A DNA stretch of 64,000 nt from Malacoraja senta (lineage: Eukaryota): NCBI GenBank assembly GCA_038087875.1, contig JAXLNO010001745.1, forward strand, positions 1 through 64,000. Direction: 5' to 3'. Shown here piece by piece: positions 14,021 to 44,360 of this stretch (its first letter is position 1; every line of letters starts with the position of its first letter). The position numbers and the translations under genes are program-made. The notes under the pieces were generated by a model that saw only the letters and a program-made list of their open reading frames with translations, made no database searches and was not told the origin of the DNA.

Positions 14021-14129
14021 TGCAGCAAAAGGTGGATTGCTTAAGGATATAGAAGGAAATATGTGCCTGGAGTTTGTGGATATAGGCGAGGTTTGGTTTC
14101 ACCAAGGAAGATATGTAGAATAGTAAGGA

Positions 14130-14940: not shown

Positions 14941-15069
14941 TTTCTTACACATGGAGAATCAATGTGGAGAATGCTAACATGCAGGGACACTTTGAAGTTA
15001 AGCAAGAAGGAGATGTTGGATCATTTGAAGAGAAATGTGGATAAATCCCCAGGACAGAGGGGTGTAGTG

Positions 15070-15535
15070 GATGATAATAATAATCGTTGAAAACATTAAT
15101 GCCGTGCTGGTTTCCGACGGGCATGGTGACGGACGCACCACACATCTCTGTCCTCCATGCAACTTGCAGGCGTGTCTTTTATCTCTACACATGCGTCTTC
15201 CATCAACGTCTTCAGCATCATCTTGATTGGCCGTCCTGGGTCAAGTCTTCCATGGGTGGGTTCCCACAGCACAACCTTGTTTGCTGGCATTTCTGGGTGG
15301 CGGAGCCAGTGACCTGCGAGCCTCATCCTTCGCAACGTGATCTTCTCGGTCAGAGGTGGATTCTCCCCATAGAGCTGGGCGTTGGTGATGTGGTCCCTCC
15401 ATCTGACATTTTGAACTTTTCCGAGCATTCGGGTGTAGGTACCATCGAGAGACTAGGACAGTGCTGGAGTGAGAGTCCAGGCATCACACCCGTACAATAA
15501 TATGGTCTCTACAGTTGTACGGAAGGCCAAATATT
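15070..15535 (-). mobile_element. RTE-clade LINE 3' fragment
   Basis: ORF 15096-15428 reads WRDHITNAQLY..RRMRLAGHWLRH..LWEPTHGR..GRP..MEDRDVW, with a (TTA)n-like tail. Confidence 0.82.
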
Positions 15536-15686
15536 CAGGCTGTAGTTCAGTGACACGTAGAGTTCTGCAGGGATCTGTGCTGTGACCCTTGCTACTTGTG
15601 ACATATATAAATGACTTGGACCCTGGTGTTCAGAAATTACCCAGTCATAACAATTAATCAAATAATGATTTTTATTTTTCTTTCAG

Positions 15687-15962
15687 ATTATCACTACGTT
15701 CAAGGACAGTTTGGTTGTGAGGTGGACGATCACAGTCCCACTGTAGGGATATTGAAGTTGGCCTTTGATGGAAGATATGCATTTAGTTTTGATAAGGACA
15801 AACTAAAGTGGACGGTGCATGATCCAATAGCTGAGCCCTTCAAAGAGAAATGGGACAAGAATGAAAAAATGAACCGTTATTTCAAGAGCTTGTTAGAACA
15901 TGACTGTGTGGATCTATGGCTTACATACTATGCAATTGGAAAGACATACCTGACCAGAAAAG
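15687..15962 (+). CDS. MHC class I-like alpha2 domain exon
   Basis: Acceptor tttttctttcag|AT and donor AAAG|gtgagt; 276 bp, the canonical class I exon 3 length. Translation (D)YHYVQGQFGCEV...AFDG...KWT...KEKW...LEHDCVDLWLTYYAIGKTYLTRK retains H93, Q96, C101, D119, G120, W133, K146, W147, C164 and Y171 (HLA-A2 numbering, manual alignment). Confidence 0.96.
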
Positions 15963-18900
15963 GTGAGTTCAGAACAAAGGATGTTGTTTTGTGATGGTAG
16001 GCAATGAGTAATATTTCACTCTGAGGCAATGAGTAATATTATCTCTGACCCAATCATGACAGAGGGAAAGGTCATTCGGCCCATTGATTCTATGCTAGTT
16101 TTCTATGCAATGTCGACAAACTGTTCCACAGCTCTCTCTCACAACTTGCACTCAGCTCCCTCGGATTCTCCTTGCATTCAGCTCCACGACGGATAATTTG
16201 CAATGTCCAACTAACTCACCGGCACGTCTTTGGTGTATGGGACAAAACTGGAGCACATGGAGGAAGCCAACTGAGTCATAAGGTGATAAGTGATGGGTGC
16301 AGCATTAGAACATTCGGCCCATCAAGTTGACTTCGCCCGTCAATCATGGCTGATCTATCTCTCCCTCCTAACCCCATTCTCCTGCCTTCTCCCCATAACC
16401 CCTGCCGTGCATACTAATCAAGAATTAAAAATATCCATTGACGGACTCCACAGCCTTCTGTGGCAAATATAATAACCATATAATAACCATATAACCATAT
16501 AACCATAACAGCACGGAAACTGGCCATCTCGGCCCTTCAAGTCCGTGCCGAACATTTTTTTTTTTTTTTTTAATTAAAAATAAATACTTTCCCCTAGTCC
16601 CATCTACCTGCACTCAGACCATAACCCTCCATTCCTTTCCCGTCCATATACCCATCCAATCTATTTTTAAAGGATAACATCGAACCTGCCTCCACCACTT
16701 CCACTGGAAGCTCATTCCACACAGCTACCACTCTCTGAGTAAAGAAGTTCCCCCTAATGTTCCCCCTAAACTTCTGTCCCTTAATTCTCAAGTCATGTCC
16801 CCTTGTTTGAATCTTCACTACTCTCAATGGGAAAAGCTTATCCACGTCCACTCTGTCTAACCCGCTCATAATTTTAAAGACCTCTATCAAGTCCCCTCTT
16901 AACCTTCTGCGCTCCAAAGAATAAAGACCTAACTTGTTCAACCTTTCTCTGTAACTTAGTTGCTGAAACCCAGGCAACATTCTAGTAAATCTCCTCTGTA
17001 CTCTCTCTATTTTGTTGACATCCTTCCTATAATTAGGCGACCAAAATTGTACTCGATACTCCAGAATTGGCCTCACCAATGCCTTGTACAATTTTAACAT
17101 TACATCCCAACTTCTATATTCAATGCTCTGATTTATAAAGGCCAGCACACCAAAAGCTTTCTTTACCACCCTATCTACATGAGATTCCACCTTCAGGGAA
17201 CTATGCACAGTTATTCCTAGATCCCTCTGTTCAACTGCATTCCTCAATTCGCTACCATTTACCGTGTACATCCTATTTTGATTTTTTCCTGCCGAGATGT
17301 AGCACCTCACATTTGTCAGCGTTAAACTCCATCTGCCATCTTTCAGCCCACTCTTCTAAATGGCCTAAATCTCTCTGTAGACTTTGAAAATCTACTTCAT
17401 TATCCACAACGCCACCTATCTTAGTATCATCTGCATACTTACTAATCCAATTTTCCACACCATCATTCAGATCATTGATGTACATGACAAACAACAGTGG
17501 ACCCAACACAGACCCCTGAGGCACCCCACCAGTCACCGGCCTCCAACCTGACAAACAGCCATCCACCATTACTCTCTGGCATCTCCCATTCAGCCACTGT
17601 TGAATCCATCTTGCTACTCCACCATTAATACCCAACAATTGAATCTTCTTAACCAACCTTCAATGAGGAACCTTGTCAAATGCCTTACTGAAGTCCATAT
17701 AGACAACATCCACTGCTTTACCCTCATCACTTTCCCTAGTAACCTCTTCAAAAAATTCAAGAAGATTAGTCAAGCATGACCTTCCAGGCACAAATCCATG
17801 TTGACTGTTCCTAGTCAGACCCTGCCTATCCAGATGCTTATATATATTATCTTTAAGTATCCTTTCCATTAATTTGCCCACCACTGACGTCAAACTAACA
17901 GGTCTATAATTGCTAGGTTTACTCTTCGAACCCTTTTTAAACAACGGAACAACATGCGCAGTACGCCAATCCTCCGGCACTATTCCCGTTTCTAATGACA
18001 TTTGGAATATTTCTGTCATAGCCCCTGCTATTTCTACACTACCTTCCCTCAATGTCCTAGGGAATATCCTGTCAGGACCTGGAGACTTATCCGTTTTCAG
18101 ATTTTTCAAAAGTGTCCGCACCTCCTCTTCTTTGAATCTCACAGTTTCCATTGCTACTCTGCTTGTTTCCCTTACCTCACATAATTCCATATCCTTCTCC
18201 TTCGTGAATACCGAAGAAAAGAAATTGTTCAATATCTCCCCCATCTCTTTTGGCTCTGCAGATAGCTGTCCACTCTGACTCTCTAATGGACCAATTTTAT
18301 TCCTTGTTATCCTTTTCCTATTAATATAGCTGTAGAAACCCTTTGGATTTACTTTCACCTTACTTGCCAAAGCAACCTCATATCTTCTTTTAGCTTTTCT
18401 AATTTCTTTCTTAATATTCTTTTTACATTCTTTATACTCCTCAAGCACCTCATTTACTCCATGCTGCCTATAATTATTGTAGATCTCTCTCTTTTTCCGA
18501 ACCAAGTGTCCAACTATCTTGCACACATTTTACAAACTCCAAACCATCCAGCCCTTTTACAGAATGTGTTTCCCAGTCTATGTGTGGAAAATTGAAATCT
18601 CCCACAATCACTACCTTGTGCTTACTACTAATATCTGCTATCTCCTTACATATTTGCTCTTCCAATTCTCGCTCCCCATTTGGCGGTCTATAATACACCC
18701 CTATAAGTGTTGCTACACCTTTCCCATTTCTCAGTTCCACCCAAATAGCCTCCCTAGACGAGCCCTCTAATCTATCCTGCCAAAGCACTGCTGTAATATT
18801 TTCCTTGACAAGCAATGCAACACCCCCACCTCTTGCTCCTCCAATTCTATCACCCCTGAAGCAACAAAATCCTGGAATATTTATTTGCCAATCACAGCCC

Positions 18901-21900
18901 TCCTGCAACCATGTTTCACTGATCGCCACAACATCATACTTCCAGGTGTCAATCCAGGCTCTAAGATCATCCACCTTTCTTACAATGCTCCTAGCATTAA
19001 AATATACACATTTAAGAAACCCACCACCACTTATTCTCTGTTTATTATCTTTTTCTTCTTTCTCCCCTACATTTTGGGTCCGAGTGCTTCCCTTCTCTGC
19101 CTCCTGCCTCCCACATTTTCCACTAGCTTTCTCTATTTGAGTCCCTCCCCCCAACCGTTCTAATTTAAAGTCTCCCCAGTAGCCTTTGCAAATCTCCCCG
19201 CCAGGATATTGGTCCCCCTCGGGTTCAAGTGCAACTATTGAGACTATGACCTCTCGTCGTAGACTCTCCCATTGGAGACATCCTCTCCACATCCACATCT
19301 ATCCAAGCCTTTCACTATTTGTTTGTTTTAAAAAATATATTTTTATTAGAAGCATGTGCATATCATAATACAAACATTTCTTATATATCAATCCTACGTT
19401 GCTAATAGGTGGGAGTCCAGCTATCAAAATAATAGTGGTCCTCATTTATCAATTGTATATTAAATCTGCTTCTATTTAGTTTTTAGTTTTTTTATAGATA
19501 GAAAGTGAGAAATTAAAAAAAAGGCATGATAAAGAAGAATGGAATAATTTACCAATAATACAACTTTGGAGATAGGTCCGTAAGTTATAAAGCATAACTA
19601 TTCATCTAATCCTGAGCTTGGATTTCAGTCAGATTCCCATGCTGAACCAATTTACCCTTTCAAAAAATCAATACATGGAGACCATATTCTATTAAATAAT
19701 TCATGTTTGTCAATTAAGACAAGTCTAGTTCTTTCCAAATGTAAGGTCTCTGATATTTCCATAATCCACATTTTAATTGTGGGGTTTATAGGACCTTTCC
19801 AAAATGTTAATATTAATTTTTTCCCAATTATTATACTATAATCAAGAAAGTTTCTTTGGTTTATTGTAAGTCTTAAGCTTTGTTCTGATATTCCTAATAT
19901 TATTAGTTTTGAGTCGGGATCCAGAAGGGGAGGGGCCATCTTGGGGAACGGCTGCTAGGTCAGCAGACGTCCGTTTAATTCACTTTTTTTTGTAGTTCTA
20001 GTGAGTCCTGTGTTCTGTTTGTGGGAGAAATAGACTTTTTAATGTAGGGGGAAGGGGTTAACTATATTTCTAGTTCCCTACCTGGTCGGTGAGGCAGCTT
20101 TTTCTCCGGGCTGCCCCGTCGACCCGTCCTCGTGGCCTACCAGCGGGCGTGGAGCGCCTTTTTCCTGGCGGGGACCGCCCAGCACCTCGGCTTCGGTGGC
20201 GGTATAGCGCTGGAGCGGGCGATGCCTTGCCTGGGTCGCCGTGCTGGATCGACGTGCTGGAGCTCCGGTGAGCTGTGATTGCCGAGGTCAACACCTCTGG
20301 GCTGCAGGTCTGCGGAGCGGAGCGGGCGGCGCCGACTTCAACATCGGGAGTCTGGGAGCTCCAAACCGGCGCGGCCTTGTCGGCTTCGGAGGCCGCGGAC
20401 TTCGGTAGGGAAGCGGCTGTTTCAGGTGGCCCAGCCGCTGAGAGGACTCTCCCGACGCCGGGCAACAGCACCCGGCGAGAACGGCCAGGAACATCGGGCC
20501 TCCGTAGAGGCAATAGCTGAGGCCTCAATAGGCCTGACTTTTGGGAGAACTGGGGTTGGGGACTGGACATTGTGCCTTCCCCCACAGTGGTAACCATCCA
20601 GTGGGGGGATGATTTCTGTGTGTTAGTGATTATTTTAGTGTGTGTCCAAGATGGCTGCTGGAAGGGAGAGTGTACGCTGGCGCGGTTTAGCTGCCGCTGC
20701 TCTCTCGTCACATTTGTGTTTCTGATTTTTTTGTTTTTGGATCGAATTCTGTCTTTAATTTGTCTATTGGTGATGTCTTTACTATTTATTTTACTCCGAT
20801 TATACGTTTTTTTACTTGTTAAATACTGTAAGGTGTCCTTGAGACTCTTGAAAGGCGCCCATAAATAAAATTTATTATTGTTATTATTATTATTATTGAC
20901 TACTTCAGAAATTATTCTGAAAATGGCCTTCCTGAAATTTTTGATTTTTATACAATTTACAAAGGTATGAGTTAAGTTAACCTCTAAATGCTGGCATTTA
21001 TCGCAAATAGGAGAGATATGTGGGAAGATTCTATTTAATTTTGTTTAATAATAATGTAATTTATGTAATACTTTAAATTGTATTAAGGCATGTCTGGCCT
21101 TTAACGAGCATTGATGTATATATTGTAGACTTTCGTCCCAAATATCTTTCGTTATAGGTTGGCCTAATTCATTTTCCCATGTGTGTCTATATAAATCCGT
21201 CGGCGGGACCTCACTATCTAAGAGGGTATTATAAATATGAGATATTAATTTTTCTGTATTAGGATGTTTATTCAAACATTCATCAAGGATTTCTGGTTCC
21301 CTAGTTCTGTAATCTTGTGTATTTGATTTAATGTAATCTCTAAGTTGTAAATATCTGAAAAAGTTATTTGAGTGTAGTCCGTAAATCTGTTGTAACTCCT
21401 GAAATGAAAGAAAAGTGCCTTTCCTATAAAGATGTCCCATCTTTTTAATTCCATAACTTTTCCATTGTGTAAAGCCTTTATCCAACATGGAAGGTTTGAA
21501 TAAAGGGTTGTTTATAATGGGGAGACAGAGTGATAAATTATCCAATTTTAAAGTATTTTTTAATTTTTCACTATATGTTTTTTAATGCAATTTTGTGTGA
21601 GCAAACATAATCGAACCAATATCAAAAGGCAAACAGTCTTTCACTATTTTGTATGATTCAATGAGGTCCCCCCTTATTCTTCTAAACTCCAGCAAGTACA
21701 GGCCCACTGCCATCAAATGGTCATCATATGTTAACCCATTCGTTTCTGGGATACCTCCTCTGGACCCTCTCCAGAGCCAGCACATCCTTCCTCAGATATG
21801 GTGTCCAAAATTGCTCACAATGCTCCAAACGTGGCTTGATCGGCGCCTTATAGAACCTCAGCATTACATCCCTGTTTGACAGGGAGAAAGTGTAATTGAT

Positions 21901-24900
21901 GTCTTTCATATTAGTTAACCATGGATTTTCTTGACCACAGTTGACAGCCCCTAATGGGATTGCATGTCTATCACACATCTCAAAAGAGCACAGCGTTAAG
22001 CTTCGAAGGGCAAAATTTACACGAGATGTGCAGGTCAAGTGTTTTTCTGCACAGAGAGAGCTTGATACCTAGAATGCGCTACCAGGAGTGGTGGTAGAGG
22101 AGGACATGATAATGGTGCTTAAGAAAGTTTTGGACAGGCTTGTGAATGTGCAGGGAATACAAGGATATGGATCACATGCAGGCAGTGGAGATTAGTTTTG
22201 GTTTAGTTTAGAGATAGAGTATGGAAACAACACCTTTGGGCCACTGAGTCCGCACTGACCAGCAATTGCCCATTCACAATTTCTGTCCTACAAGCTAGGG
22301 ACAATTTACAGAAGCCAATTAACCTGCATATCTTTTGTATTTGGGAGGAAACCGGAGCCCCCAGAGAAAACCCACAGGGTGACAGAGAGAACGTACAAAC
22401 TCCGTCCAGACAGCACTCTAGTCAGGATCGAACCCGGGTCTCTAATGCTGTAAGACAGCCACTCTATCACTGTGCCTCTGTGTTGCCTTAATTTAACTTG
22501 GTATCCTGTTCGACATGGACATTGCAGGCTGAAAGTCCTGTTCTTGTACTGTTCTATGTTCTATATATTCTCATTGGACAGGGCAGGGATATGTTTTCCA
22601 CTCCTCCAGCCTCCATGTTGAATACTTACTCCCAGTTTAAATCTGATTCAATTAGTCAATCCATTTCTCCCTCCCCTCCTGCCCTGATCCCCATTCTATA
22701 TTTTGAAGTAATCATTCCCTTTTTCACTCCCTGGTCTGTCTACTATGCCCACAACTTTCCTCTACTTTCCAGTCTTGGTGCATGCAACATCTATCCATTT
22801 ACCACTTTCCATAGACCCAGGCAGTTCTTCAAAGTGAAACAGCGTGAAACACTTGGACTTCCAGTCAAATCTACTGCATTTAGTTTTCATGACGTAATCT
22901 TCCACATGGCATCAATGAAACAAATTGGGTGGCTGCTTTCTGGAGAACCTGCATTCAATCCATGGGACTTTCTAAGATTCCTAATTCCTGCCACTCTAAT
23001 TCTCCATTCAACACCCACCATGATCCATCCATCTGTACCTCTTACACTAGCATAACAAGGGTGAAAGTAACCTCGAGGACCAACAACTCAGCTTCTGTCT
23101 GGACATGTTGCAGCCTTTCAAACTCAATTCCACATTCAACGAGTTGCATTCCCTGTCGATAAAAGAACTGGTCATTTCAACTGTTAAGTTGAAGACAGAA
23201 AGAACAGATGCAAGAAGTATGAAGCAGGATCCCAAGCTGAAACATTACATAACCATGTCTTCCAGATGCTGCCTGAACCACTGAGTTACACCTGCACGTT
23301 TTTTGTTTTTTTTAAATTACAGTAAAGTTATCCACCTACCAAATCAGGACAGCCTGACCTACTTGAGTACTGCAGTATGTCTGCATTTTATATAACTCTG
23401 TTTAGTTTCATGCATGCAGAGATGCAGTGAAATGGTTTGGATGGAACAGCAGATGCTGGACACCCCGTCCCTTCTCTCCAGAGATGCTGCCTGTCCCGCT
23501 GAGTTACTCCAGATTTTTGTGTCTATCTGCAGTGAAATGGTTGTTCTGCATTCTCCCCAGTCAAGTCATACTGTACATAAGTACATTACGTCCACTTCTG
23601 GAACAGCACGCAGAGATCCACCACATTCCAGGACACATTGCAGCTTTCAAGTCTCTGAGAAGTCTGATTTTGCCCTAAGGAAATACCCAATTTCTAATTT
23701 TCCCATGTTAAGGCCCAGTGTCATAACAGCACTGGATTGATGAAGTTGACGCGCCTGCCTCAGTTAAAGTTTTTCTGTTTCAAGATTGTGACCAAACCCT
23801 CGTCACTGGAACTGTGTCGCAGTGCCACCCATTACTTATGTCCCAATTATCTTTCAACATGCTGGAATCACTTGTTTTTTTATCCTTTTTAGACTTTTTT
23901 CATGAATTGTTCAGCATAAACAGTTATGCTACAACAAAGTTAAGCGCAGCTACGACTTAGTTCCAGAGACGTAACAACACAAGAGATAGTGTTGGAAGAA
24001 TGATCAAACTCACACATAGTGGTTATTAGTAACTTTGCAGAGGAAACACAAGGTGCTTTCTTCTCAGCAGGCTTACTACCAGTCTACCAGAGAGAGAGAG
24101 AGAGCTGTCTAATAAGCCTGTGGGCGGAGCCACAGTATGAGTGACACTAATCTACAGATAGGCACAGGGATAAGTTTTGGTTTATTATTTTCACGTTTAG
24201 TTTCGAGGTACAGCATGGAAATAGGCCTTTTGGCCCACTGAACCTGTGCTGACTAACGACCACCCAAATATTAGTTCTATCCTACACACTAGGGACAATT
24301 TACAGAAGCCAAAAAACTTACAAACCTGCACGTCTTTGAATGTGACGGAACTGCAGCACCCGGAGATAACTCACATGGTCACAGAGAGAATATATGAACT
24401 CTATATAGACAGCACCCATTGTCAGGATTGAACTTTGGTCTGTGGTACTGTAAGGCAGCAACTTTCCAGGTACAGTTGCATGCTATCCAATTGGATGAGA
24501 TAACGACATACATGATCAAGTCAACTCAAGTACTGAAGGTAGAGCAAAGGGGAAGGTACAGAGTGTGGCATATAGTTCTCAGCAATGTAGCACACCAGTT
24601 CCATTAGATAAGGGTTTCGACACAAAACGTGACACATTCCTTCTCTCCAGAGATGCTGCCTGACCCGTTGAGTTACTCTAGTATTTTGTGTCTATCTGCA
24701 GTTTAAACCAGCATCTACATAGTTCTATAAATAAAGTTCACTGTCTGTAATGGGGTAGTGGTCAATTGGACAGAACCCTAGCTTATGGAACGATCATTCA
24801 GAAGCCTGATTTTCTCCTCGGTTATCAAGTTTTCAAGTAAGCCATTTGGTCCTCTAACCTGCCCACCATTCAATATGACCATGGCTGACGTTCCTCAGGC

Positions 24901-27900
24901 ATCAACTCCTGTTCGGTGCCAGTTCCTCATTGCACTCAATTCTCCAATCTTTCAAAAGTTTAACTACCGCCACATTAAATACTTCCAATGAGTTTGTCTT
25001 CACAAATCTCCAGAGTCAAGAGCGCCAGAGAATGACCACACTCTGCAAAAAGAGATTTTGTAAACAAATGACTGATCTCTTTTATCTCTTATTGAAGAGG
25101 AGTGAAAATACGGCCAATTTTAAGCTTGTCCCTCCCCAATTGACCCTCATTTCATAACTTGTCAATTATTTATTATTGTCAATAATGTGCCCTAGTGAAA
25201 AGATTTGCCGTTGGTATTAGTTTATTATTGTCACATGAACTGAGATATAGTCAAAAGTTTGTCTGTGTGTTATCCAATCAGATCATACTACACATGTGCA
25301 ATCAAGCCATCCACAAGTAGAACAGTACAAAGAGAAAACTACTCAGAGTGCAGAATACCGGGTTACAATATCATAGCATTACAGTTACAGAGAAAGTGCA
25401 GATCAAAAAGAGTTGCAAGGATCACAATGAGATTGGTTGGAAGTTCAGGGCAACATCTTATCTTACATGAGAATCATTCAGTAGTCCAATAACAGTGGGG
25501 AAGAAGCTGTTCCTGAATTTAATGGTACGTACTTTCAAACTTTCTTGTGTACTGTCTTAACAGGGAGCATACAATCCCTTTTAAACCACATGGTTGGTTG
25601 ATGGGACGAAAGAGGCAAAATGGGGCAGATGTGGACAGTAACTTGGTTGTTGTAGACTGAAGAATATTTTGTGGTGGGTGACTGTGCAAGTTTTACTGAA
25701 GATGAAAATAACCATCTTACTGTCTTGTAGTTTCCCCTGAGGTATCTCTCGCTGCCCGCCCTGATGATCATTCAGTCCTGTACTGCACTGTGTTTGGATT
25801 TTACCCACCGGCCATCAATGTCAGCTGGTTGCAGAATGGTCAACATGTCTCTGAGACCAAATCTTCTGGGGTCATACACAACAACGATGGAACATATCAT
25901 CTAAGGTCTGTCCTTGAGTATGATCCGTATGATGGGAAACAGTATTCCTGTCATGTCGATCACAGCAGCCTGCCCGGTGGGAAGATCATCATCTGGGGTA
26001 AGAACGTTAAATATTCTTTCATAGATAATCATTATCTTCTGTTGTATCCATTTTAATCATCGGGAATACATCCCATATTCCAAGATGCTTAAACTTTCTT
26101 TGTTTAGTGGTGTTGCTCTAAGTAATCACGTAATCAGCACCCACTCTCCACATGAGCAGAAGACTTTGTCAACAGAACATTGATCAAAAGTAAATAAATA
26201 ACTAATATACAAGGAAGGAGTATTTGGGATTCTCAGTGGTGGAACTGATATCCATGAAAGGTATGTTTAAATAAAAAATGAATCTTGATGTGATTAACAG
26301 CAAGGCACTGGGGGAGTACATGCCCCAATCCAAATCAATGGTCCGAAGTGGAAATGATTGAGAGCTTCATGTTCCTTGGCATGAATGTATCCAATATTCT
26401 GTCATGGACTGGCCACATAGCCAAGGGGACACACCAACACCTCTACTTCCTCAGGAGACTGAGAATATTCATCATGTCTCTGGTGACTCCAGCAAACATC
26501 TATAGATGCCGCTAGAGAAAGCATGTTGTTGGGTTGCATCACATCTTGATTTGGGAACTGCACTGCCCAAGACTGCAAGAATATACAAAGAGTTAAAGAT
26601 CATCACACAGCCCAGACTTCCCACTATTGGCTCAATCTACACTAGGTTGCCTTGGAAAACGAGACTTATCCCACCCCGGTCATTCCTCCTTCCTGCTCCC
26701 ATCAGGCAATAGGTACTGAAAGTTGAAAATATGCACTGCCAGACTCAGGAACACCCCCTTTCCACCTGTTAACAGGCTTCGGAAGGGTCCTTCCATAATG
26801 TAGGTTTAAATCCCGATTCACCTCAACCTCATTGCACATTGAACATTGTCTATGGAACTGATGTGTTACAATGTTGAGAACTATATTCTGTACTCTGTAT
26901 CCTCCTCTTTGCTCTATCTATTGTTTTTGAGTTTGTATTTATGTATAGTATTATAATTTGTTTGGATAGCATACAAAACAAACCTTTGCTCTGTATTTTG
27001 AAACATCTGGCATTAATAAAACAAAACCTAATGAAGTAAGTTCCCTGACGCAAGTTACAGATTCAGCAACAACAAATATAGCTGCCTGACAAATAGCGAT
27101 CGTACTAGTTTGATTCCAAGTATGCTGCACTATCCTACACAAATGTTCACTTTTGAAGATTCCCTCGAACAATGCACAACTAAGGAATCTGATGTTTCAC
27201 TCTGAAGACTGTTGACATACTCCAGAACTTAATTTCCAACCTATCTATGTATCATCAGCAATCTAGGCTACAGCGCCATCAGCCCTTTCTTCTGCTCTTA
27301 ATACCAACGATAAGTAGTTCACTTTCTTGCAATGATTCCCAACCTGCAGTTGCAGTTTCCCAACCTGAACACTCCTTTAAGACAACTCTCTGCTTGCTCT
27401 AAATTGTTTTTTCCATTCATGCTAATTATTACCCCCAATGTCATAAGCCTTTGCATCACTAGATTGATATCTTATGAAAATCCAGATATTGTGCGACATC
27501 TGGTGGTCAGGCCACTTATTGCTAGAACCCTCGTCAGGGGAGCTGGGACTATCACATGACAGGGTTTTGGTGGGAGTTGGTGATGAATCAGTCGCCAGTC
27601 AACTGGTGTGCCCGATAACAACGGCAGGAACTTTGCTCAAGTCCTTACTAAACGTGAGTGGGCCAAAACTGTATTTCTTTTAAAAAAAAACATTGATTTG
27701 TTCACGACGCTTGGATCTCTACAATATATTGTATTTCTTTTGTTTCTCATTTCAATTGTGTTACCTATTCTGCTTTTCCATCATTTTGTTTTTGAATTTT
27801 AGGCTTTTCACACCTGCTGCTCGAATATACATTGTCTACGGGTTCCTGTTGCATTTTCAAAGAATTCTAATCAATTTCTCAAACAAAGTTTGAAGAAGGG

Positions 27901-30900
27901 TCCCAAAACGAAACGTCACCTGTCCATGTGTAAGAAGAAACTGCAAATGCTGGTTTACACCGAAGATGGACACAAATTGCTGGAATAACTCAGCTGGTCA
28001 GCCAGCATCTCTGGAGAAAAGGAATAGGTGATGAATCCATATTCGCCAGAGATGCTGCCTGTTCCGCTGAGTTACTCCAGCATTTTGTGTCTATTATGTA
28101 TATTCTTTTCACTGACTGGTTAGCATGAAACAAAAGCTTTTCACTGTACCTCAATACATGTGACAATAAACTAAACTAAAGCTTTTGTGTAAATCAGTAT
28201 CTGCATCTCTTTCTTTCTACAATTTTCCTGTTAATGCACTTTATTGTTTTGTTATTACTTAAATGTTCTGCCATTACTGAAAGGAATCCAACATTTCCCC
28301 CAAAACAGATGTCAGATTATATAGGGTTAAAGCTTTCTGATTTCTATTCGCCTTCTTTCATGAATTAAGTTGTGGCTGTGATGGTGCCATAGATCATAGA
28401 GTTGTACAGAACAGATATTGTCCCTTTGCCATGTTGCAGAACTCCGTGATTCAAAACAACATATTTATATATGTTGAAAAGCGCCAAAGATAGACACAAA
28501 ATGCTGGAGTAACTCAGCGGTGAGGTAGCATCTCTTGAGAAAAGGAATAGGTTGCATTTCGGGTCGAGACCCTTCTTCACCCTGAAGTCTTCAGACAGTG
28601 CCAATCTATTTAGCTGCACTGCTTAGCAATTGATTTGTAAAATTATGCATTTTTATTTTTCAGAAGGAAATGGGAAGAAAGACAGGCACATATGCCTTAT
28701 TGCCGTGTGTGTGCTGATATTGTTGGCTGTTGCTTTGGCAGTAATTGTTTGGTGGAGAAAAAAGAGGAGAGGTAAGATGGAAACATTGTGATGAACTGTT
28801 GCTAGTAAAGGTATTGGGCTTGAAGAAATGATCGATCTCAAGTAGGATAAGGCATCAGCTACACCTGAAATGCCTCGACAGTCACCACTGTCAACTAGCC
28901 TTTGTGCTGTTGTTAAATGTTTCTGATAATCAGATATTTAAAAATTGTGAATTCAGTGTAAAAAAATGTTATACATTATGGATTCACTGCCCCAAATCCT
29001 AGAAATATCAATGAGTCATTAAAAAGTACAGCATGCATGCAGTCCTTTCGGCCCACCGTGTCCATGCCAACCACCAACCAACTGTTCTCATGAATTCTAT
29101 CTCATTGCACCTTCTCATCCAGTCACCCACCCACTAGGGGCAATTTACAGTGGCCAATTAAACAATAAACTGACACATCTTAGGATGTGTGAGGAAACCG
29201 GAGCCCCTGGAGGGATCCAATGCGGTTACACGGAGAACGTGCAAACTCCACATAGATGGCACTCAAGGTCAAAATTGAACCCGGGTCTGTGTCGCTGTAT
29301 GGCAGCAGCTCTACGAGTTGTGACACTGTGCTGCTCTGTTGGGGGCTCGCACTGTTCATGATCCAAGTCAGCTATGAGGCAGATTGGTTGCAGTTTAACG
29401 TTTTCTAGTTTTGTTTAGTTTAATTTAGAGATACAGTGACGAAACAGGTCCTTAGGCCCGCCGAGTCTGCGCTGACCAGCGATCCGCGCACATTAACACT
29501 ATCCTATACACATACACCAAGCCAATTAACCTACATACCTGTACGTCTTTGGAGTGTGGGAGGAAACCTTAGATCTCGGAGAAAACACACGCGGTCATGG
29601 GGAGAACGTACAAACTTTGTACAGACAGCATCAGTAGTCGGGATCGAACCCGGGTCTCCGGTGCTGCAAGCGCTGTAAGGCAGCAACTCTACCGCTGCAC
29701 ACAGTAGCTGCCACCAAGGCCGCTGTTGCTGGAAAACTCCAAATTAAGTGGGAATGTGAGTAGTGGGAGAAATGGTTCAAGGTGGAAAGCCGAATGAATG
29801 AGCAACAACATGACAGGTGGACTACAATGTGAAACAGGACAGCACAGAGCCAGAGACCTGAATTAAATACCGACATCATCTGTTGTATCTGTAGAGTTGG
29901 ATGTTGTTCCTGTGACCATGTGGGTTTCCCCAGGTGCTCTGGTTTCCACCCACATCCCCAAAACATTGTTTGGTAGGTTAGTTGTCCCCTAGATTGTGCA
30001 TGATACAATGCGGGGAGAGCTGATGAGAATGTGGGACAAATGTAGGATTAGTGTACATGAATGGTTGGTGCAGGTCAGTGGGACAAAGGCCATGTTTGTA
30101 TGCTGCATATTTCCATGACTCTTTATGATGTAGAAAGATGCTGACTATTTATGATTTATAAGATTGGGAAAGACTGTGAGGGACAGTGCTATAGTAACTC
30201 AGCAGGTCAGGCAACATCCCTGGAGACCATGGATAGGTGACAATCTGGTTCGAGACTCTTCAGGCAAATTACAATGTTTGTACATAATGCAGCATGGTAG
30301 TGCAGCTGGTAGAACTGCTGTCTCACAACGCCAGAGACCCAGGTTCAATCTGGACCTCGGGTACTGTCTACGTGGAGTTTGCACGTTCTCTTGTGACTAT
30401 GTGGGCTTCCTCAGGGAGCTCCGGTTTCCTCCCATATCCCAAAGATGAGCAGGTGTGCAGGTAATCATCCTCGGTAAGTCACCCTGATAGTGTAGGGGTG
30501 GATGGGAAATCTATTATGAATGGGTGATTGCTGGTTAGTATGGATTTGGTGGCACAAATGGCCTGTTTACACACTATCACTGTTTTCAAGAGAGAGTTAG
30601 ATTTAGCGCTTAGGGCTAAGGGAGTCGGGGGATATGGGGGAAAAGCCAGATCGGAGTATTAATTATGGATGATCAGCCATGATTGTATTGAATGGCGGTG
30701 CTGGCTCAAAGGGCCGAATAGCCTATTCCTGCACTTATTTTTTATGTTTCTATCTTTCTATTAAATAAACTAAATTGGAAGACAGAAGGTATTGACTGAT
30801 GCATCTTCACGCCAGCTGTAAATGTCATAAACTGTGAGAATTGATTGCAAATGTTATACAATATTATAAACTAAACTGCGTGATCAAAATGACAAGATGG

Positions 30901-33900
30901 ATGAAGAGCAGAGTTTTCATTGAAATAACAGAGGTGCAGCTTTCTCGAGCACTTGGCCTTGGTTGTGTAATATTTCCTCTTCAAAATACAATGTTCCCAG
31001 GTATTGCTGGTCTGAGACACCATTCAGCAAGTATATTTCCTGAAATTGAGATTCTGCTTTCATGGTATCAAGATGTCTAACAGCTCCAGCACCCAGATCA
31101 GAACCTTGCCAAAACTAAGAATGCAGCAACAATTTAGTCATTGAACATCAACGTCATGCATATTTGAACTGAGGCAATGGTTAGCTTATTATCACTGTAA
31201 ACCAGTCATGGTCATGGGTCTGCCATTGTGGTCACTATTAGTGAGGATGATTAACTATCATTTAGCAGCGAAACGAAAAAGAATTGGCTTTTCAAGCCCA
31301 CGGAGCCATAGAGTCATACGGCATGGAAATGGGCCCTTTGCTTCAACTTGGCCATGCCAACCAAGATGCCATGTTTAAACTACAATTTTCCTGCAATTGA
31401 CCCATATCTCACTGAACCTTTCCTATCTACAGTATGTACCTGTCCAAGTGTGTTCTAAATGTTTTTTAATACCTGCCTCAACTCCTTCCCCTGGAATGTT
31501 CTTCCATATTTCCACTTCCTCTGGTTCCGAGTAACTCGTTCCCTTCTCACCTTAAACCTAAGTCCTCTGGTTCTTGATTACATAAGGCTGGTTAAAAGAT
31601 TCTGTGCATTCAATCTATCTATGCTCCTTGATTTTATAAACTTCTATAAGATCACCCCTCAGCCTCTTGCGTGCCAAGGACTAAAGTCCAAGCATTCTTA
31701 TCCTCTCCCTGAATCACAGGCCCTGTTAATGACATCCTTCCGATAGTGGAGTGACCAAAACTTAACACAATACTCCAAATGTGGCCTCACCATCATCTTG
31801 TACAACTGTAGCAGAACATCCCAACTTTTGTATTCAGTACCTTTCTTTTAAAATCTTTTTATTGTTTTTTTTCCAAAAAACAAAAACAAAAATAAAACAT
31901 AAAAAACAGAGCAAAAAGATACAAAGGGATCAGGATTAAACACATTAATAACAGGTATAATCTAATATGAGACCAGTGTCAAAATACACAATGAATATAG
32001 ACCTCTATGTAAATATAGTTAAATCTTTAAAAGGAAACATAAATGTAAAAAAAAGCAAAGATAAAAAGACAAAAAGAAAAAGAAAAAACAAAACCCCATA
32101 AACTAAAAAAACGTTTTTAAAAATTGATAATAATAAAATAAGAATAAAAATAAAATAAATAAATAAAACAAAACAGAGCAAAACCGAATCTGAACTGAGA
32201 AATTCAACAATTTAAGTCTGTTTGTCGTCAAGTCCATTCCACCCTATGAAGGTAAAATAATTTTTATAAAGGTTAAAGAGGGAACAATTTATGTTGTATG
32301 AAAGTGTTCAATAAGTTTTCCCCAAGTCTTATCAAATTTAACCAAGGGTTCAACAATGTCACTTCTAATTTTTTCTCAATTTAAACATGATATTGTCTCA
32401 GAATACCACTGGAGTGTGGTCGGAGGGTTGGAATCTTTCCATTTAAAGAAAATAAATCTTCTGGCAATTAATGTGGTAAAAGCAATCAACCGATGGGCGG
32501 AGTGGGACAAATGAATAGAATCTAACATTGGTAACCCAAAAATTGCAGTAATAGGATGAGGTTGTAAATCGATACCTAAGACTACCGAAATAGTATCAAA
32601 AATGTCTTTCCAATATTTTTCCAAAAGAGGGCAGGACCAAAACATATGGGTCAGTGATGCCACTTCAGAGTTACATCTGTCACAGGTAGGATTTATATGA
32701 CCATAAAAACGAGCTAACTTATCTTTTGACATATGAGCTCTGTGGACCACCTTGAATTGTATCAAAGCGTGTCTTGCATACATTGAAGAGGTATTAACTA
32801 ATTGAAGGATCCTCTCCCATTTCTCTATAGATAAAGAAATTTGGAGTTCCCTTTCCCAGTCATCCTTAATTTTATCAAATGTATCTATTTGTAATTTTGA
32901 AATCAACTCATGAATAGTCGTTATTAACCCTTTCTGATAATGGTTCAACTGTAAAAAAAATCCAAAATTTCGGGTTGATGTGGTAGCGGAAAAAGGGGTA
33001 GTTCCTTTTGTCTAATTTGTAAATATCTAAAAAAGTGTGAATTAGGTAAGTTATATTTATTGGAGAGTTGTTCGAAAGACATAAAACAACCTTCCAAAAA
33101 CAAATCACGAAAAGCTACTAATCCCTTCCTCTTCCATAACAAAAAAACTTGATCAGTACTAGATGGTTGGAAGAGAAATTTGGATAAAATCAGATAGTCC
33201 AAAAAACTTACGAAATTGAAACCGTATTCGGAACGTATGTCTTATTATTGGGTTCGTCATATATTTATTCAATCTCGTAATTGTAAAAGGTAACGAGGTC
33301 CCTAGAATAGAAGCCAATTATAGCCCTTGTAAGGAATCACGTTCTAGGTTTATCCATCCAGGGCATTGGGTATCTTCTAAATCTTTTGTCCAAAATGTTA
33401 AATAACGAACATTGACTGCCCAATAGTAGAGTCTAAGGTTCGGCAATGCCAAACCACCATCTTTTGGGGATTTCTGTAGGTATTTTTTACCTAGTCTGGG
33501 ATTTTTATTCTGCCACATATATGAAGAAATTTTAGAGTCTATAATATCAAAGAAAGATTTGGCAATAAAAATTGGTATCGTCTGAAATAAATGCAGACAT
33601 TTAGGTAAAATGAACATTTTAATAGCATTGATTCGGCCAATTAAGGATAAGGACATTGGTAACCATTTAGTGAACTGATGTTTAATATGGTCAATTAAAG
33701 GAATAAAATTAGCTTTAAATAAATCCTTGTGTTTCTTGGTGATCTTAATACCTAAATAAGTAAAACTTTCAGTAGTCAATCTAAATGGAAACTGTCCATA
33801 ACTCGAAACAAAATTATTTAATGGGAAAGCTCACCCTTACTAAGATTTAGTTTATAACCAGAAAAACTACTGAATTGATTAAGTAATGCTACTATTGCCG

Positions 33901-36900
33901 GAATAGATTTCTCAGGGTTAGAAATAAATAATAACAGATCATCTGCATAAAGAGATAGCTTATGTGTCTTAATCCCGCGGACAATACCAAAAATATTAGG
34001 GGATTCCCTAATAGCAGTGGCTAAAGTTTCCAAAGCAATATCAAATAGTAAAGGACTTAAGGGACAGCCCTGTCTAGTACCTTGAAAGAGCCTGAAAAAA
34101 AGGGGATCTCTGATTATTAGTAAATACAGAAGCCTGAGGTATAAGATATAGCAGTTTGATCCAAGAGATAAATTTTGGACCAATCTTAACTTTTTCAAGT
34201 ATATTGAATAAGTTTTCCATTCTACTCAATCAATAGCCTTCTCGGCATCAAGTGAGATGACACATTCTGGGGTTTTATTAGACGCTGTATATACAATATT
34301 TATTAATCTCCTAACATTAAAGAATGAGTAACGATTTTTAATAAAACCTGTCTGATCTTCAGAGATAATTTGCGGTAAAATCTTTTCCAATCTCATAGGT
34401 AATATTTTTGAAAGAATTTTAAAATCTACATTTAACATTGATATAGGTCTATATGATGTCACTTCAGTAGCGTCTTTATCTTTTTTTTTAATTAAAGAAA
34501 TAGAAGCTTCATAAAAAGATTGTGGTAATCTATTGCTTAAAAAGGCTTCTTTAAATACCTTGCATAGCCATGGAGACAATACATTTGAGAAATACTTTTA
34601 AAATTCTACTGTAAATCCATCTAAACCGGGAGCTTTACCAGATTTCATTGAAAAAATTGCTTTCTGTATTTCTTCTTCCGTGATGGGTTCATCTAACAAC
34701 AGATGGTAAATTGTATGGTAAATTTGGTAAGTTCAGTTTCTGTAAAAACTCATGCATTATATTGGGATCAGTAGGAAAATCTGATTGGTATAGGGAGGTA
34801 TAAAATTGCTGAAAGGATTTATTAATTTCGTGATGGTCTACAGTTACTGTACCATCCCGTTTACTCACTTTAGTAATCTGACGCTTGGCCGACACTGCTT
34901 TCAATTGATTAGCAAGTAATTTACCAGATTTTTCACCATTTATATAAAATTTACTTTTGGTTTTAAGTAACTGGTTCTCAATCGGTGATACTAATAACAA
35001 ATCATATCTCAATTGAAGTTCAACTCTATTCTTATAGAGCTCTAAACTAGGAGATTTTGAATATTTTTTATCAATTTCTTTAATCTCGTCAGCCAATGTG
35101 CGTATTTCTTTTTGTGTTTGTTTTTTTAATCCCGCGGAGTATGAAATAATTTGTCCACGAATATATGCCTTAAAAGCATCCCAAACAATATCATTGGATA
35201 TCTCTTCATTAGAGTTTGTCAAGAAGTAAAAAGCAATCTGATCTTTCATAAACTTAATAAAGTTTAAGTCTTGAAGCAAAGTAGCATTAAATCGCCATTG
35301 TTTAGCACTAAACTTGGAATCAGGTAGTTTGATCAATAGTTTCACTGGTGCATGATCAGAAATAGCAATTGTATCATACTCACATGCAATGACCGATGGA
35401 AATAGCCGAGAATCTAGTATAAAATAGTCGATCCTAGAATAACTATGAAATACATGAGAGAAAAATGAAAATTCTTTGTCATTTGCGTGTAAGAATCTCC
35501 AAATTTCTTACATTCCCGAGTCAAGTAAAAAATAATTAATAAAATTAGCTGATTTATTTGGAAGCGCATGATCAGATGTAGACCTATCAATCGAGGGATT
35601 CAAACAGCAATTGAAGTCTCCATCCATTATTAAAAAGTGTTCATTTAAATTAGGAAAGGATGCAATTAACTGTTTAAAAAACTCAGGGTGATCAATATTT
35701 GGTGCATAGACATTCACCAAAGCCACTTTTTGCCTAAAAAGGACAGCGGTAATCACCAAGAATCTGCCATATGGATCAGAAATTGTTTCATGGTGAACAA
35801 ACGGAATTGAGGAGTCAATAAAAATAGAGACTACCTTTCACCTTAGCCTGTGAATTTGAATGAAACTGCTGTCCTCTCCAAAACTTGAAAAATCGTGACT
35901 TGTCATCTTGCCTTACATGAGTTTCCTGAACAAAGATAATCTGAGCATTTAGTCTGTGAAGAACTTTTTTTTAAAAAGTCCTCTTAATGGGATGGTTCAA
36001 GCCATTCACACTCCATGAAAGGAAATGAGTAACTTTATCCATATTGCTTGTAAAAATCATGTGGGATGTAATGGGTTAATTTCTTGAAGCCTAAAAGTTC
36101 ATAATACTGGAAGAAGAAAAATCTAGGGCGGAGTCAGAAGTGACGACATTTCAGCCAATTTTGTAGTTCAGAATTTGCACAAATGGAGATCACTAAATAG
36201 GGAACAAAAGACCCCTCCCCCTTCCCCCCTCCCACCCCTGTAGAACCCCAAACTGACCAAAAGAGTCAGCAAACTACCTAATCCCCTCCCCAATCCCATC
36301 TCTCCCAGTAACAGCGCTCAGCATAAAAAGAATAATATTTAACCACTACTTCATAACACATTCGTTATTATCTCTTTGAGAGAGAAGAAGAAAAAAATAC
36401 AGACTGGCATGGAATGCTGCTTATTATTATCCAAGGTCAAGATATGAAAAACAAGAACTGCATTCTCTTAGTTTGTCTAACGACAGGGGAACACGAATTA
36501 ACAAAGAAATTCTTAAAAGAATATATATAAAAGAAAAACAACTCGTCCAGTTAAATTCTTAATCATTACCAAACAAAATGTTGTCAAAATAGGAACAGTA
36601 AATCTCCAATTATAACTTAATCAGCTATCTATTACTCCCCTTCCTCGTCGTAGCTCTTCAGAAAGCTGGAGGCGTCTTGAGGACTGTTAAAAAATTGAAC
36701 GTTACCATTGAAAAGCCGAATACGCAATATAGCTGGTGATAATAGAGCTGGGCGCATTTTCTTATACAAATCAGACATTACATTATAAAAAGTCTTTCTT
36801 ATTTCCAAAAGCTCATAACTATAATCAGGGACAAACCGAAACTCTCATCCTTCATATTCAACCACACCAAACTTTTTTGCTGCCTGGAGAATATTCTCCT

Positions 36901-39110
36901 TCATTTGAAAAAAATGAAACCGAATGCTCAAGTGTCTCGGTTTATTACCGGATCTCTTCCCAATCCTGTGTGCCTTATCCAGGAACGGAAGGTTTTCATT
37001 GTGCTCAATGTTGAATGTTTCCTTTTTCATTTTAGAAGCATATTTTATAACGTTATCTCCTTCTTGGGCTTCGGGCAAACCAACAATTCGTCAATTCAAA
37101 CCACGGCTTCTGTTTTCTAAGTCCATATTTTTAGACTTGTATTGCTGAAGTGTTTTCATTCATTCTCCGTTCCAATTTTTCAATCTTCAAATCTCTCTCC
37201 TGTCCCAGGGTGCGCAAGATATCAATTTGATCCGTTTGTTCACGAAGTTCATCTTGTAACAAAGACAGTTTTCCTTGGACTTCCTTCAATTTGGTCGAAA
37301 CTCCTTTCACCATTTCTTCCAAACTGCCAAATCTTGTTTTCATTTCATTTTTCAGCTCGTTGTTCAATTCATCATTCATTTTTCGATATTGCTTCTATGA
37401 TGCTGGAATCAGAAGCTGCAGCTGTGGTGGTGGCTTTCCCCAGTTCCTTCTTTGGGGATCCTCCTTTCCTTCTTGTCTCCATCCTTTTCACGATTAAGGC
37501 GTGTAAAAGTGTTATCAACACTTTATGAACAGTTAGACGGTGTCTTGAAGTCAAATAGTCACCAGTAACATTGAAAGGGTAGTGAGGGGAGCAGAGAGGA
37601 TCATTGGCGTCTCCCTACCCTGGGTACAAGAACTGTTCCAGAGCCGCTGTCTGAAAAAAGCTCAGAGAATTGCTAAGGACAAACTGCACCCCCTCCACAT
37701 ACACCTGGATCTCCTGCCATCAGGCAAGAGATATCGCAGCATCAAAGCACGGACCACAAGACTGCTAAACAGCTTCCTGCCATATGCTGTGAGGCTGCTA
37801 AACAGCCACTCTGTACTCACAGTCACCTGATTCAGCGGCTTGGCACGGACACTTTAATAACTGGCACTGGCCACTTCAATAACTGGCACTGGCCACTCAA
37901 ATCAGCTGCCCCGGACATCTTTATGATTGGTTTTACTGTATTTTAACGTTGTTGTTTTACCTACTTTTTCACTATTTATACTGTTCCATCAGGGACTGGA
38001 TTGTTTTTAGTGTTATTACGTGTGAAATGTTTTAAATTTCATGTGCGATGCTCCGGTATTCCCTGGGAAACGTCTTTTCATTTTGCACTGTACAACTGTT
38101 GCTTCCAAGATGACAATAAAGGTTGATTGAATGATTGATTGAATGAAAGAGTGGTCAGTGGAAGTTAAAAGTTAAGGGAGCAAACGAGTTTGCAACCTTA
38201 CAGCATGCTGCCACAAGGAGAGTCTAGTTATTGACATGTTATTGATGTTCATGATTATTCTGTTCTTTGTGCCTGGCCATTTTGACTTTGTCACATTTTA
38301 CTTGGTTTATGATATTGTACAAGATTTGCAATCACACCTCCCAATTGACTAAAATTATCCCAATTAACTAATTGCCTACTATGGCATTTAAATTATTGCA
38401 TTATATTCAGTGCAGCGTAGAAGCTGCAGTTTTTTAAAAAGGGCAAGTTTTTATTACATACTATGTGGTGTGTGCCTGGAAAGCACTGCCAGGGATGGTG
38501 GCGTCTGGCGTGCACCTTCGTGGGTGCATGGAGATGCAGGGGTTTGAGGGACATGAATCATTTGCAGGCAGATGCTGCCTAACTGGTGTCTGTCCGACTG
38601 ATCTGGAGGGATCTGATGGTCAGGCAGGGAATATTTCCAGTGACCCAATGGTGCTGAGTTCGCTGAATTTTACGGTGAATGGGAATGCCCCTGTAATAGA
38701 GGAACAGGTCCTTTGTCCAACAACGTTTGTGCTGAACATGAGTCCGCACCAACCAACGATCACCCACATAAGCTAGGGACACAAGTCAATTAACCTACAA
38801 ACCTGCACATCTGTCTTTGGAATGTGGGAGGAAACTGGAGCACCTGGAGAAAACCTATGCAGTCACAGGGAGAAGGTACAAATTCCATACAGACATCACC
38901 CGTGGTCAGGATCAAACCCAGGTGTCTGGCGCTGTGCCTTTATATCTGGAAGGAAGATGTTATGTGGGATGAATCAACAGTTAAAGCGAATAAACTAGTT
39001 GCATCTTTCTGAGTTCTGTTCTCTGCTATGCCATTTCTTTGTTGTCTAATATTTAATTTCCCTCCTCAGATTATCAAAATATTCAACCAAAGCAGAACGT
39101 GCACTGCTAA
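15687..39110 (+). CDS. Non-classical MHC class I-like heavy chain gene (5'-partial; alpha2, alpha3, TM and cytoplasmic exons)
   Basis: Four exons with AG/GT boundaries, all phase 1, join into one open frame: alpha2 276 bp, alpha3 267 bp, TM 108 bp, tail 41 bp to TAA. Domain order and exon phasing are those of MHC class I. The lineage cannot be assigned without a phylogeny. Confidence 0.9.
16470..19233 (-). mobile_element. CR1 LINE (young; 5'-truncated, internally deleted)
   Basis: Endonuclease (YFNARSI, ISETWL, VGDFN), RT (QHGF, VPQGSVLGP, YADD) and a (TATGGTTA)n tail. A deletion of about 386 bp relative to the 41-44 kb copy falls near 18519. Confidence 0.95.
19320..21560 (-). mobile_element. 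L1-clade LINE ORF2 3' fragment, interrupted
   Basis: ORFs 21045-21545 (FFRYLQLRDYI, LIQFKVLHKL) and 19652-19939 (ILTFWK, IWSPCIDFL) with an A-rich 3' end; split by the 19940-20895 insertion. Confidence 0.85.
19940..20895 (+). mobile_element. Non-autonomous GC-rich retro-element inserted into L1
   Basis: Interrupts the L1 frame and ends in AATAAA plus a (TTA)n tail; no recognisable ORF. Confidence 0.6.
21560..22190. mobile_element. Older CR1 3' fragments in both orientations
   Basis: EQFWTPYLRKDVLALERVQRR (minus strand) and a plus-strand KLRRAKFTRDV-like CR1 end. Confidence 0.7.
22195..22490 (-). mobile_element. tRNA-derived SINE
   Basis: Same SINE core with a (TAAAC)n tail. Confidence 0.8.
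24175..24470 (-). mobile_element. tRNA-derived SINE (decayed)
   Basis: Same SINE core. Confidence 0.72.
25731..25997 (+). CDS. MHC class I-like alpha3 (C1-set Ig) exon
   Basis: Acceptor tgtcttgtag|TT and donor TGGG|gtaaga. Translation (V)SPEVSLAARPDDHSVLYCTVFGFYPPAINVSWLQNG...DGTYHL...YSCHVDHSSLPGGKIIIW carries the C1-set motifs CxxxGFYP, W and YxCxVxH. Confidence 0.96.
28664..28771 (+). CDS. MHC class I-like connecting peptide/transmembrane exon
   Basis: Acceptor ttttatttttcag|AA and donor AGAG|gtaaga; phase 1-1. Encodes (E)GNGKKDRHICLIAVCVLILLAVALAVIVWWRKKRR: a hydrophobic helix followed by a basic stop-transfer run. Confidence 0.92.
29030..30570. mobile_element. Cluster of four tRNA-derived SINEs
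   Basis: Copies at about 29030-29330 (-), 29410-29712 (-, best conserved), 29860-30120 (+) and 30290-30570 (+). Confidence 0.8.
31845..37560 (-). mobile_element. Near-full-length decayed L1-clade LINE
   Basis: ORF1 remnants at about 37554-36640 (coiled coil; LDKAHRIG..KPRHLSIRF). ORF2 from the ATG at 36042 has endonuclease (LSWSVNGL, GDFNC), RT (GTRQGCPLSPLLF, LYADD) and a Cys-rich C-terminus (CDRC..HMFWSC). A-rich 3' UTR; many stops and frameshifts. Confidence 0.93.
37562..38145 (+). mobile_element. Rex1/Babar LINE 3' fragment
   Basis: AERIIGVSLP..KAQRIAKDKLHP..LLPSGKRYRSIKARTTRLLNSF, ending in GACAATAAA plus a (TTGA)n tail. Confidence 0.85.
39070..39110 (+). CDS. Probable terminal cytoplasmic-tail exon (DYQNIQPKQNVHC*)
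   Basis: Strong acceptor ctaatatttaatttccctcctcag| with a branch-like ctaat. Phase 1 matches the TM donor and gives a YxxPhi motif. It lies 10.3 kb from the TM exon (5.7 kb of that is L1), and there is no transcript evidence. Confidence 0.62.
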
Positions 39111-44000: not shown

Positions 44001-44360
44001 GGATAAGCTTTTCCCATTGAGAGTAGGGAAGATTCAAACAAGGGGACATGACTTGAGAATTAAGGGACAGAAGTTTAGGGGGAACATTAGGGGGAACTTC
44101 TTTACTCAGAGAGTGGTAGCTGTGTGGAATGAGCTTCCAGTGGAAGTGGTGGAGGCAGGTTCGATGTTATCCTTTAAAAATAGATTGGATGGGTATATGG
44201 ACGGGAAAGGAATGGAGGGTTATGGTCTGAGTGCAGGTAGATGGGACTAGGGGGAAGTATTTTATTTTTAATTTTAAAAAAAAATTAAAAAAAATTTAAA
44301 TGTTCGGCACGGACTTGAAGGGCCGAGATGGCCTGTTTCCGTGCTGTTATGGTTATATGA
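41060..44360 (+). mobile_element. CR1 LINE with ORF1 esterase end and nearly complete ORF2
   Basis: ORF1 SGNH-esterase end (DHWDFFWGRSDLYRKDGLHLNPRG), then ORF2 endonuclease and RT broken by a frameshift near 41635, a TAA at 42417-42419 and a frameshift near 43330; TTATGGTTATATG tail. Confidence 0.96.

Follow-up and report, generated by a model that had tools for sequence, protein, structure and literature searches.

Introduction

Two non-classical class I molecules of the major histocompatibility complex (MHC) in sharks and rays, UFA and UGA, have been compared with the lipid-presenting CD1 proteins of mammals. UFA was described as CD1-like (PMC10751288), and both UFA and UGA, whose genes are single- or low-copy in sharks and rays, are reported to bind lipids resembling those of human CD1d, as judged by crystal structure and mass spectrometry (PMC12562908; a personal communication in this 2025 review). 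A PDB entry, 9CH4, titled 'Crystal structure of shark nonclassical MHC CLASS I, UGA' according to Foldseek, was released on 2026-03-18. In CD1 itself, the YQNI-type cytoplasmic tails of CD1b, CD1c and CD1d drive recycling through late endosomes (PMC5002277), examples being RRRSYQNIP in human CD1b and RRRVYQNIQ in pig CD1d (PMC5002277, Table 2). Here, we analyzed 64,000 nucleotides of DNA from the skate Malacoraja senta (assembly GCA_038087875.1, contig JAXLNO010001745.1, positions 1 to 64,000 of the forward strand; hereafter, the window). Within it lie the four 3′ exons of a class I gene, for alpha2, alpha3, the transmembrane segment and the tail. We conclude with good confidence that this gene is the skate orthologue of UGA, a conserved non-classical MHC class I molecule of sharks and rays, and that its hydrophobic groove most likely holds lipid tails.

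Probable UGA Identity of the Window Gene

The best PDB match of the window protein, by a wide margin, was the shark UGA chain 9CH4_A, with E-values of 6.8e-35 for alpha2 and 3.7e-33 for alpha3. The next alpha2 matches, MR1 and bird class I, came at ~1e-12 (best 4.7e-12), and the classical shark class I molecule 6LUP followed at 1.8e-8. Furthermore, the orthologue from the skate Amblyraja radiata aligned with 9CH4 without a gap (E 9e-118), and an AlphaFold2 model of its ectodomain (predicted local distance difference test score 93.8) superposed on 9CH4 with a template modelling (TM) score of 0.91–0.93. A zebra-shark protein (P0172) is ~88% identical to 9CH4, also without gaps.

The window protein is 91% identical to its counterpart in A. 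radiata, 90% to that in Leucoraja erinacea and at most 90.4% to those in Rhinoraja longicauda. An exhaustive HMMER search with alpha2 returned three close representatives, after which identity dropped to ~40%. Family members, which carry the automatic annotations 'class I F10 alpha chain-like' or 'MR1-like', occur in skates (Amblyraja, Leucoraja, Rhinoraja), a sawfish (Pristis), rays (Mobula, Hemitrygon) and sharks (Heptranchias, Heterodontus, Pristiophorus, Stegostoma, Scyliorhinus, Cetorhinus, Mustelus). A maximum-likelihood tree was built from 59 class I sequences, with 9CH4 represented by its 88% relative P0172 and not itself a row, and in it the 16-member family formed one clade (Shimodaira–Hasegawa-like approximate likelihood ratio test, SH-aLRT, 99). 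This clade divided between sharks and batoids, the pattern that orthologues should show, with P0172 in the shark half and the window protein inside the skates (SH-aLRT 100). Taken together, the tree, the 9CH4 match and the superposition of the model thus point to UGA. The original prediction, which was made from the letters of the window, had proposed a cartilaginous-fish gene for a non-classical class I molecule with a hydrophobic, CD1-like groove, and this much is borne out by the UGA orthology and by the pocket composition described below. Its suggestion that the gene might be UFA or a new lineage is not, as the gene is UGA.

The sister branch of the family (SH-aLRT 97) is a Leucoraja erinacea class I gene, P0016 (XP_055486430), which adjoins the UGA-like copy P0157 of that skate (consecutive accessions on one contig), so that a UGA-like copy and another class Ib gene are neighbors there. 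P0016 resembles UGA in having 9CH4 as its best PDB match, in carrying L159 and in the alpha1 motifs YYxLNHG, VPRQRWMA and AGFHGI.KG; it differs in being only 38–43% identical and in lacking a Y-x-x-hydrophobic tail. Judged by its sequence, it is a sister class Ib lineage. A separate UFA structure was also sought, but P0016 likewise matches only 9CH4 in the PDB. Neither a second class I gene nor a GPR139-like neighbor, as in Leucoraja, was found in the window, which contains no gene besides this one.

Composition of the Groove

What kind of ligand would such a groove accept? Residues were assigned from two alignments, one by HMMER with the class I chain 7CPO, in which T, K, W, Y, W and Y are retained at the positions in question, and one of 25 sequences. 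HLA-A2 numbers were given through the landmarks C101, D119/G120, W133, K146/W147 and C164, with no human sequence aligned; this numbering implies one deletion near 104–108 and one insertion near 148–151. The alpha2 residues F51, K54, W55, L68, L76, Y80 and A31 are thereby the equivalents of T143, K146, W147, Y159, W167, Y171 and Y123, respectively. Both alignments agree with the replacements first proposed (T143 to F, Y159 to L, W167 to L and Y123 to A) and with the retention of K146, W147 and Y171. The predicted V95, G97, F99, L114, L116, M152, Y155 and F156 are also present, while positions 118, 124 and 126, which that proposal likewise placed in the groove, do not belong to the standard pocket positions.

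The 18 alpha2 pocket residues are V95, G97, F99, L114, L116, A123, W133, F143, K146, W147, M152, Y155, F156, L159, L160, D163, L167 and Y171. Their mean Kyte–Doolittle value is 1.28, compared with −0.05 ± 0.56 in 67 other class I sequences. Among 83 class I sequences, the window pocket is one of the most hydrophobic, and nearly all the top ranks are occupied by its own family; the hydrophobicity is beyond chance. 9CH4 has the same residue at 15 of the 18 positions, including G97, F99, F143, L159 and L167; at the other three, the substitutions (V95 for L, L116 for F and A123 for I) are all hydrophobic. Compared with A. radiata, the pocket positions show zero amino-acid replacements, and the ratio of nonsynonymous to synonymous substitution rates is 0.27 in alpha2 and 0.44 overall, which agrees with the lipid-binding reading. 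It had been proposed that the small G97 and A123 deepen the groove. Of these, G97 is common to the whole family, including the crystallized shark protein, and it is A123, with L116, that is smaller in the skate. Because several polar residues that hold peptide ends are lost, and because the lining is aliphatic and aromatic, the groove most likely accommodates lipid tails.

The alpha1 half could be read from the skate orthologues, which keep Y7, Y59 and R84 in the 25-sequence alignment, beside helix hydrophobics (F70, I73, I74 and W81) that were mapped by hand. Consequently, the peptide-terminus network has been lost only in part. The original prediction had set against itself an alpha1 domain that combined an intact Y7, Y59 and R84 with a polar groove: the three residues are indeed kept in the orthologues, but the groove is not polar. 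An extra cysteine at alpha1 position ~31 (motif LDGCEI) was seen in nearly all members of the UGA family, with no partner cysteine evident in alpha1 or alpha2.

Could the protein instead be a non-classical class I molecule that presents peptides or lipopeptides, like HLA-E/Qa-1 or chicken YF1, with the retained anchors gripping one peptide end in a hydrophobic groove? The window's K146, W147 and Y171 and the orthologues' Y7, Y59 and R84 would fit such a molecule, as would the Pfam, PDB and AlphaFold DB searches, which put the protein closer to class I and MR1 than to CD1. On the other hand, T143, Y159, W167 and Y123 are all swapped, throughout the family, for residues that do not form hydrogen bonds, and, in contrast to peptide presenters that follow diverse ligands, the groove signature hardly varies between sharks and rays. 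Moreover, lipids are what the review reports for UGA (PMC12562908). We regard a peptide presenter as quite unlikely.

Several points nevertheless weigh against a lipid-holding UGA orthologue. The kept Y7/Y59/R84 and K146/W147/Y171 make a hydrophobic peptide or lipopeptide a possible ligand; the published lipid claim is based on a personal communication in a review and on a PDB title; the window lacks the gene's start and one half of the groove, and the copy could therefore be truncated; and the overall substitution-rate ratio of 0.44 against A. radiata is based on only 33 substitutions.

Cytoplasmic Tail

The tail, RKKRR-DYQNIQPKQNVHC, bears the Y-x-x-hydrophobic sorting motif YQNI, and every family member whose tail is complete, whether from a skate, a ray or a shark, has a motif of this form. 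The window thus combines the two features expected of the CD1 family, a hydrophobic groove and a tyrosine-based endosomal sorting tail.

The tail also bears on whether the protein might be an MR1-like presenter of small metabolites or a class I-like protein that presents nothing, such as ZAG, HFE or FcRn. Several family members have been named 'MR1-like' automatically by NCBI, and both the sequence and the fold searches place MR1, HFE and ZAG near the top. Identity to MR1, however, is only 26–28%, and the family forms a clade of its own. In MR1, the groove lysine K43 serves Schiff-base ligands; in the alpha1 domain of the orthologues, which was aligned by hand only, the corresponding stretch appears to have no lysine, alpha1 itself being absent from the window. 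A membrane anchor with an endosomal sorting tail, furthermore, suits an antigen presenter and not the secreted ZAG. We judge an MR1- or ZAG-like role to be very improbable.

Gene Structure and the Upstream Region

The window is vertebrate DNA with reverse-transcriptase open reading frames (ORFs) of long interspersed nuclear elements (LINEs) and long introns. All four exons (Table 1) are in phase 1 and start after an AG acceptor, and all but the last end at a GT donor; the acceptor of the tail exon is at 39068–39069, and its frame joins that of the transmembrane exon. When spliced, they encode a 229-aa partial protein without internal stops. The alpha2 exon scored 50.2 bits with Pfam MHC_I (cut-off 28.3), and the alpha3 exon scored 71.9 bits with C1-set. 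The alpha2 disulfide cysteines C101–C164 and both cysteines of the alpha3 domain are present (four in all), alpha3 holds one N-glycosylation sequon, NVS, and the product of the transmembrane exon is 86–89% identical to the same segment in the Leucoraja and Amblyraja proteins. The span originally proposed for the gene, 15687–39110, runs precisely from the first base of the alpha2 exon to the last base of the stop codon.

Table 1. Exons of the UGA-like gene and other features of the window.
Feature	Position	Strand	Details
Region 5′ of the alpha2 exon, a presumed portion of intron 2	1–15686	+	Only 14109–15686 collinear with the A. radiata intron
alpha2 exon	15687–15962	+	276 bp, phase 1; AG acceptor, GT donor, open frame
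alpha3 Ig C1-set exon	25731–25997	+	267 bp; AG/GT splice sites
Connecting peptide, transmembrane helix and basic stop-transfer RKKRR exon	28664–28771	+	108 bp
Last coding exon, cytoplasmic tail (D)YQNIQPKQNVHC and TAA stop	39070–39110	+	41 bp; YQNI motif
Read-through past the alpha3 donor	25998–26056		Ends ...IIWGKNVKYSFIDNHYLLLYPF-stop
G/A-rich macrosatellite	1–7650		Units of ~4.1 kb at 88–97% identity; strong positive GC skew
LINE, first family, copy 1	16472–19300	−	Antisense in the alpha2–alpha3 intron
LINE, first family, copy 2	41646–44360	+	
LINE, first family, copy 3	60826–62362	−	
Second LINE-like element	32376–35759	−	AT-rich (GC ~32%); zf-RVT domain
ORF with reverse-transcriptase domain	52292–53275	−	327 aa; domain score 114 bits
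Run of assembly gaps	53963–60017		

Reading on past the alpha3 donor leads to a stop codon, and a similar read-through ends the NCBI models of Leucoraja P0157 and Rhinoraja P0197. The read-through may represent either a soluble isoform that has been conserved or an artefact of the gene models.

Where, then, are the leader and alpha1? Neither exon turned up when the window was searched by tblastn (E up to 10) with a fragment of 9CH4 and with complete orthologues from skates and sharks, in agreement with the earlier statement that alpha1 is not in it. At the orthologous locus of A. radiata (L001), the gene spans 78 kb, in the order leader, alpha1 (32 kb on), alpha2 (11.3 kb after alpha1) and alpha3 (20.4 kb after alpha2). 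By blastn, the window is collinear with this locus from 14109 to ~48800, at ~80–95% nucleotide identity, and positions 1–14100 have only dispersed repeats in common with it. Intron 2 is most likely enlarged in the window species, with alpha1 located beyond the window; an alpha1 exon upstream would be predicted to encode roughly GPHTLIYYYTLNH...GFHGIIKG..NET.

Alternatively, the copy may be a truncated or dead gene fragment that has lost alpha1 and the leader, its four exons being a relic. Neither missing exon lies within the 15.7 kb upstream of alpha2, compared with 11.3 kb for alpha1 in A. radiata; collinearity with that species ends at ~14.1 kb, and a macrosatellite occupies 1–7650. However, the four exons are all open, with intact splice sites, and their identity to A. 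radiata (93–97%; 96.7% at the nucleotide level for the alpha2 exon) exceeds that of the introns (~80–90%). Pocket residues, too, are the same as in two other skates, and intron lengths vary greatly between the species, intron 3 being 9.8 kb here and 20.4 kb in A. radiata. We judge a truncated or dead copy to be improbable.

Repeats in the Window

The macrosatellite extends past the start of the window and is without a counterpart in the orthologous A. radiata intron. The first LINE family, with endonuclease and reverse-transcriptase ORFs, has three copies in the window, which are 85–93% identical to many copies at the A. radiata locus. The second LINE-like element lies, in antisense orientation, within the intron that separates the transmembrane exon from the tail exon; it is absent from the A. 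radiata intron. The 327-aa ORF holds a full reverse-transcriptase domain and an ALKBH8_N-type segment and adjoins the run of assembly gaps.

Discussion

From these features, we can outline how the molecule may work. The UGA protein is a type I membrane glycoprotein, a class I heavy chain that, by homology, probably pairs with beta2-microglobulin. Its alpha1/alpha2 groove, lined by aliphatic and aromatic side chains and without several of the polar residues that bind peptide ends, would hold the lipid tails. The YQNI tail, as in CD1b, CD1c and CD1d, would recruit adaptor proteins and lead to recycling via endosomes, where lipids may be exchanged, and the loaded complex would presumably be recognized by T cells. 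The proposal of a CD1-like lipid presenter, with which the analysis started, is supported in that the gene is a UGA orthologue and that UFA and UGA have been described as CD1-like lipid binders (PMC12562908; PDB 9CH4).

The lineage, its CD1-like character, a crystal structure and close orthologues annotated by NCBI are already public, and the finding is thus already known. Its wider interest is that, with UGA and UFA, antigen presentation of the lipid type reaches back to the earliest jawed vertebrates, a point relevant to whether CD1-like function equals classical MHC in age, as has already been argued (PMC10751288, PMC12562908, PDB 9CH4). To this, the window contributes another skate orthologue and confirms that skates and sharks have kept both the groove residues and the CD1-like YQNI tail. 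The small additions are a map of the gene's 3′ exons in this genome, a skate-specific reduction in size at residues 116 and 123, and an expansion to about ten copies in Rhinoraja longicauda.

In the latter species, ten distinct UGA-like proteins (P0164 and P0195–P0203) are encoded on one 41.5 Mb contig and fall into one 90%-identity cluster, being near-identical by eye. Because ten distinct proteins come from one chromosome, UGA looks multicopy in Rhinoraja longicauda, in contrast to its description as a single- or low-copy gene.

How does the window gene compare with the known systems? It shares its lineage and domain lengths with the crystallized shark UGA (9CH4), to which the skate orthologue aligns without gaps, but it is a batoid orthologue and only ~60–68% identical. 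Where 9CH4 has F116 and I123, the skate has L116 and A123, and the region of its F pocket should, from these residues, be roomier. The tails of the shark UGA proteins stop right after the motif, whereas the skate tail (YQNIQPKQNVHC) is longer. It is conceivable, though doubtful, that skate UGA functionally differs from the crystallized shark protein, the smaller L116 and A123 widening the F-pocket end and the gene having multiplied in at least one skate (Rhinoraja longicauda), so that a CD1-like presenter would have diversified toward other lipids or a broader range of them.

Classical shark class I (UAA, 6LUP) has the same fold and domain order and is the second-best structural match (TM 0.86–0.88). 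It differs in the weak alpha2 match noted above and in that T143, Y159, W167 and Y123 are replaced in the window. Assignment to classical class I was rejected, as the invariant set of Y7, Y59, R/Y84, T143, K146, W147, Y159 and Y171 is broken by F143 and L159 (and, beyond this set, L167 and A123 are found).

CD1b, CD1c and CD1d, finally, share with the window gene a hydrophobic groove, the loss of alpha2 residues at the peptide termini and a short, basic tail of YQNI type, and the six-exon layout is that of CD1 (PMC5002277). Unlike CD1, the window keeps K146, W147 and Y171, and its orthologues keep Y7, Y59 and R84. Membership of the CD1 family was also rejected on profile and fold searches, no joint tree with CD1 having been built. 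With Pfam MHC_I_3 (PF16497; cut-off 35 bits), the window alpha2 reached 16.6 bits and P0172 29.8 bits, and the A. radiata orthologue (P0154) gave no match at E up to 0.01. In Foldseek, there was no CD1 in the top 50 PDB fold matches, and in the Swiss-Prot fold search, CD1c stood at rank 23, with 22% identity, behind chicken class I, MR1, HFE and ZAG. Sequence and backbone both mark the protein as a class I molecule and not CD1. Skate UGA would function like CD1, yet, judging from sequence and fold, it is not by descent one of the CD1 family.

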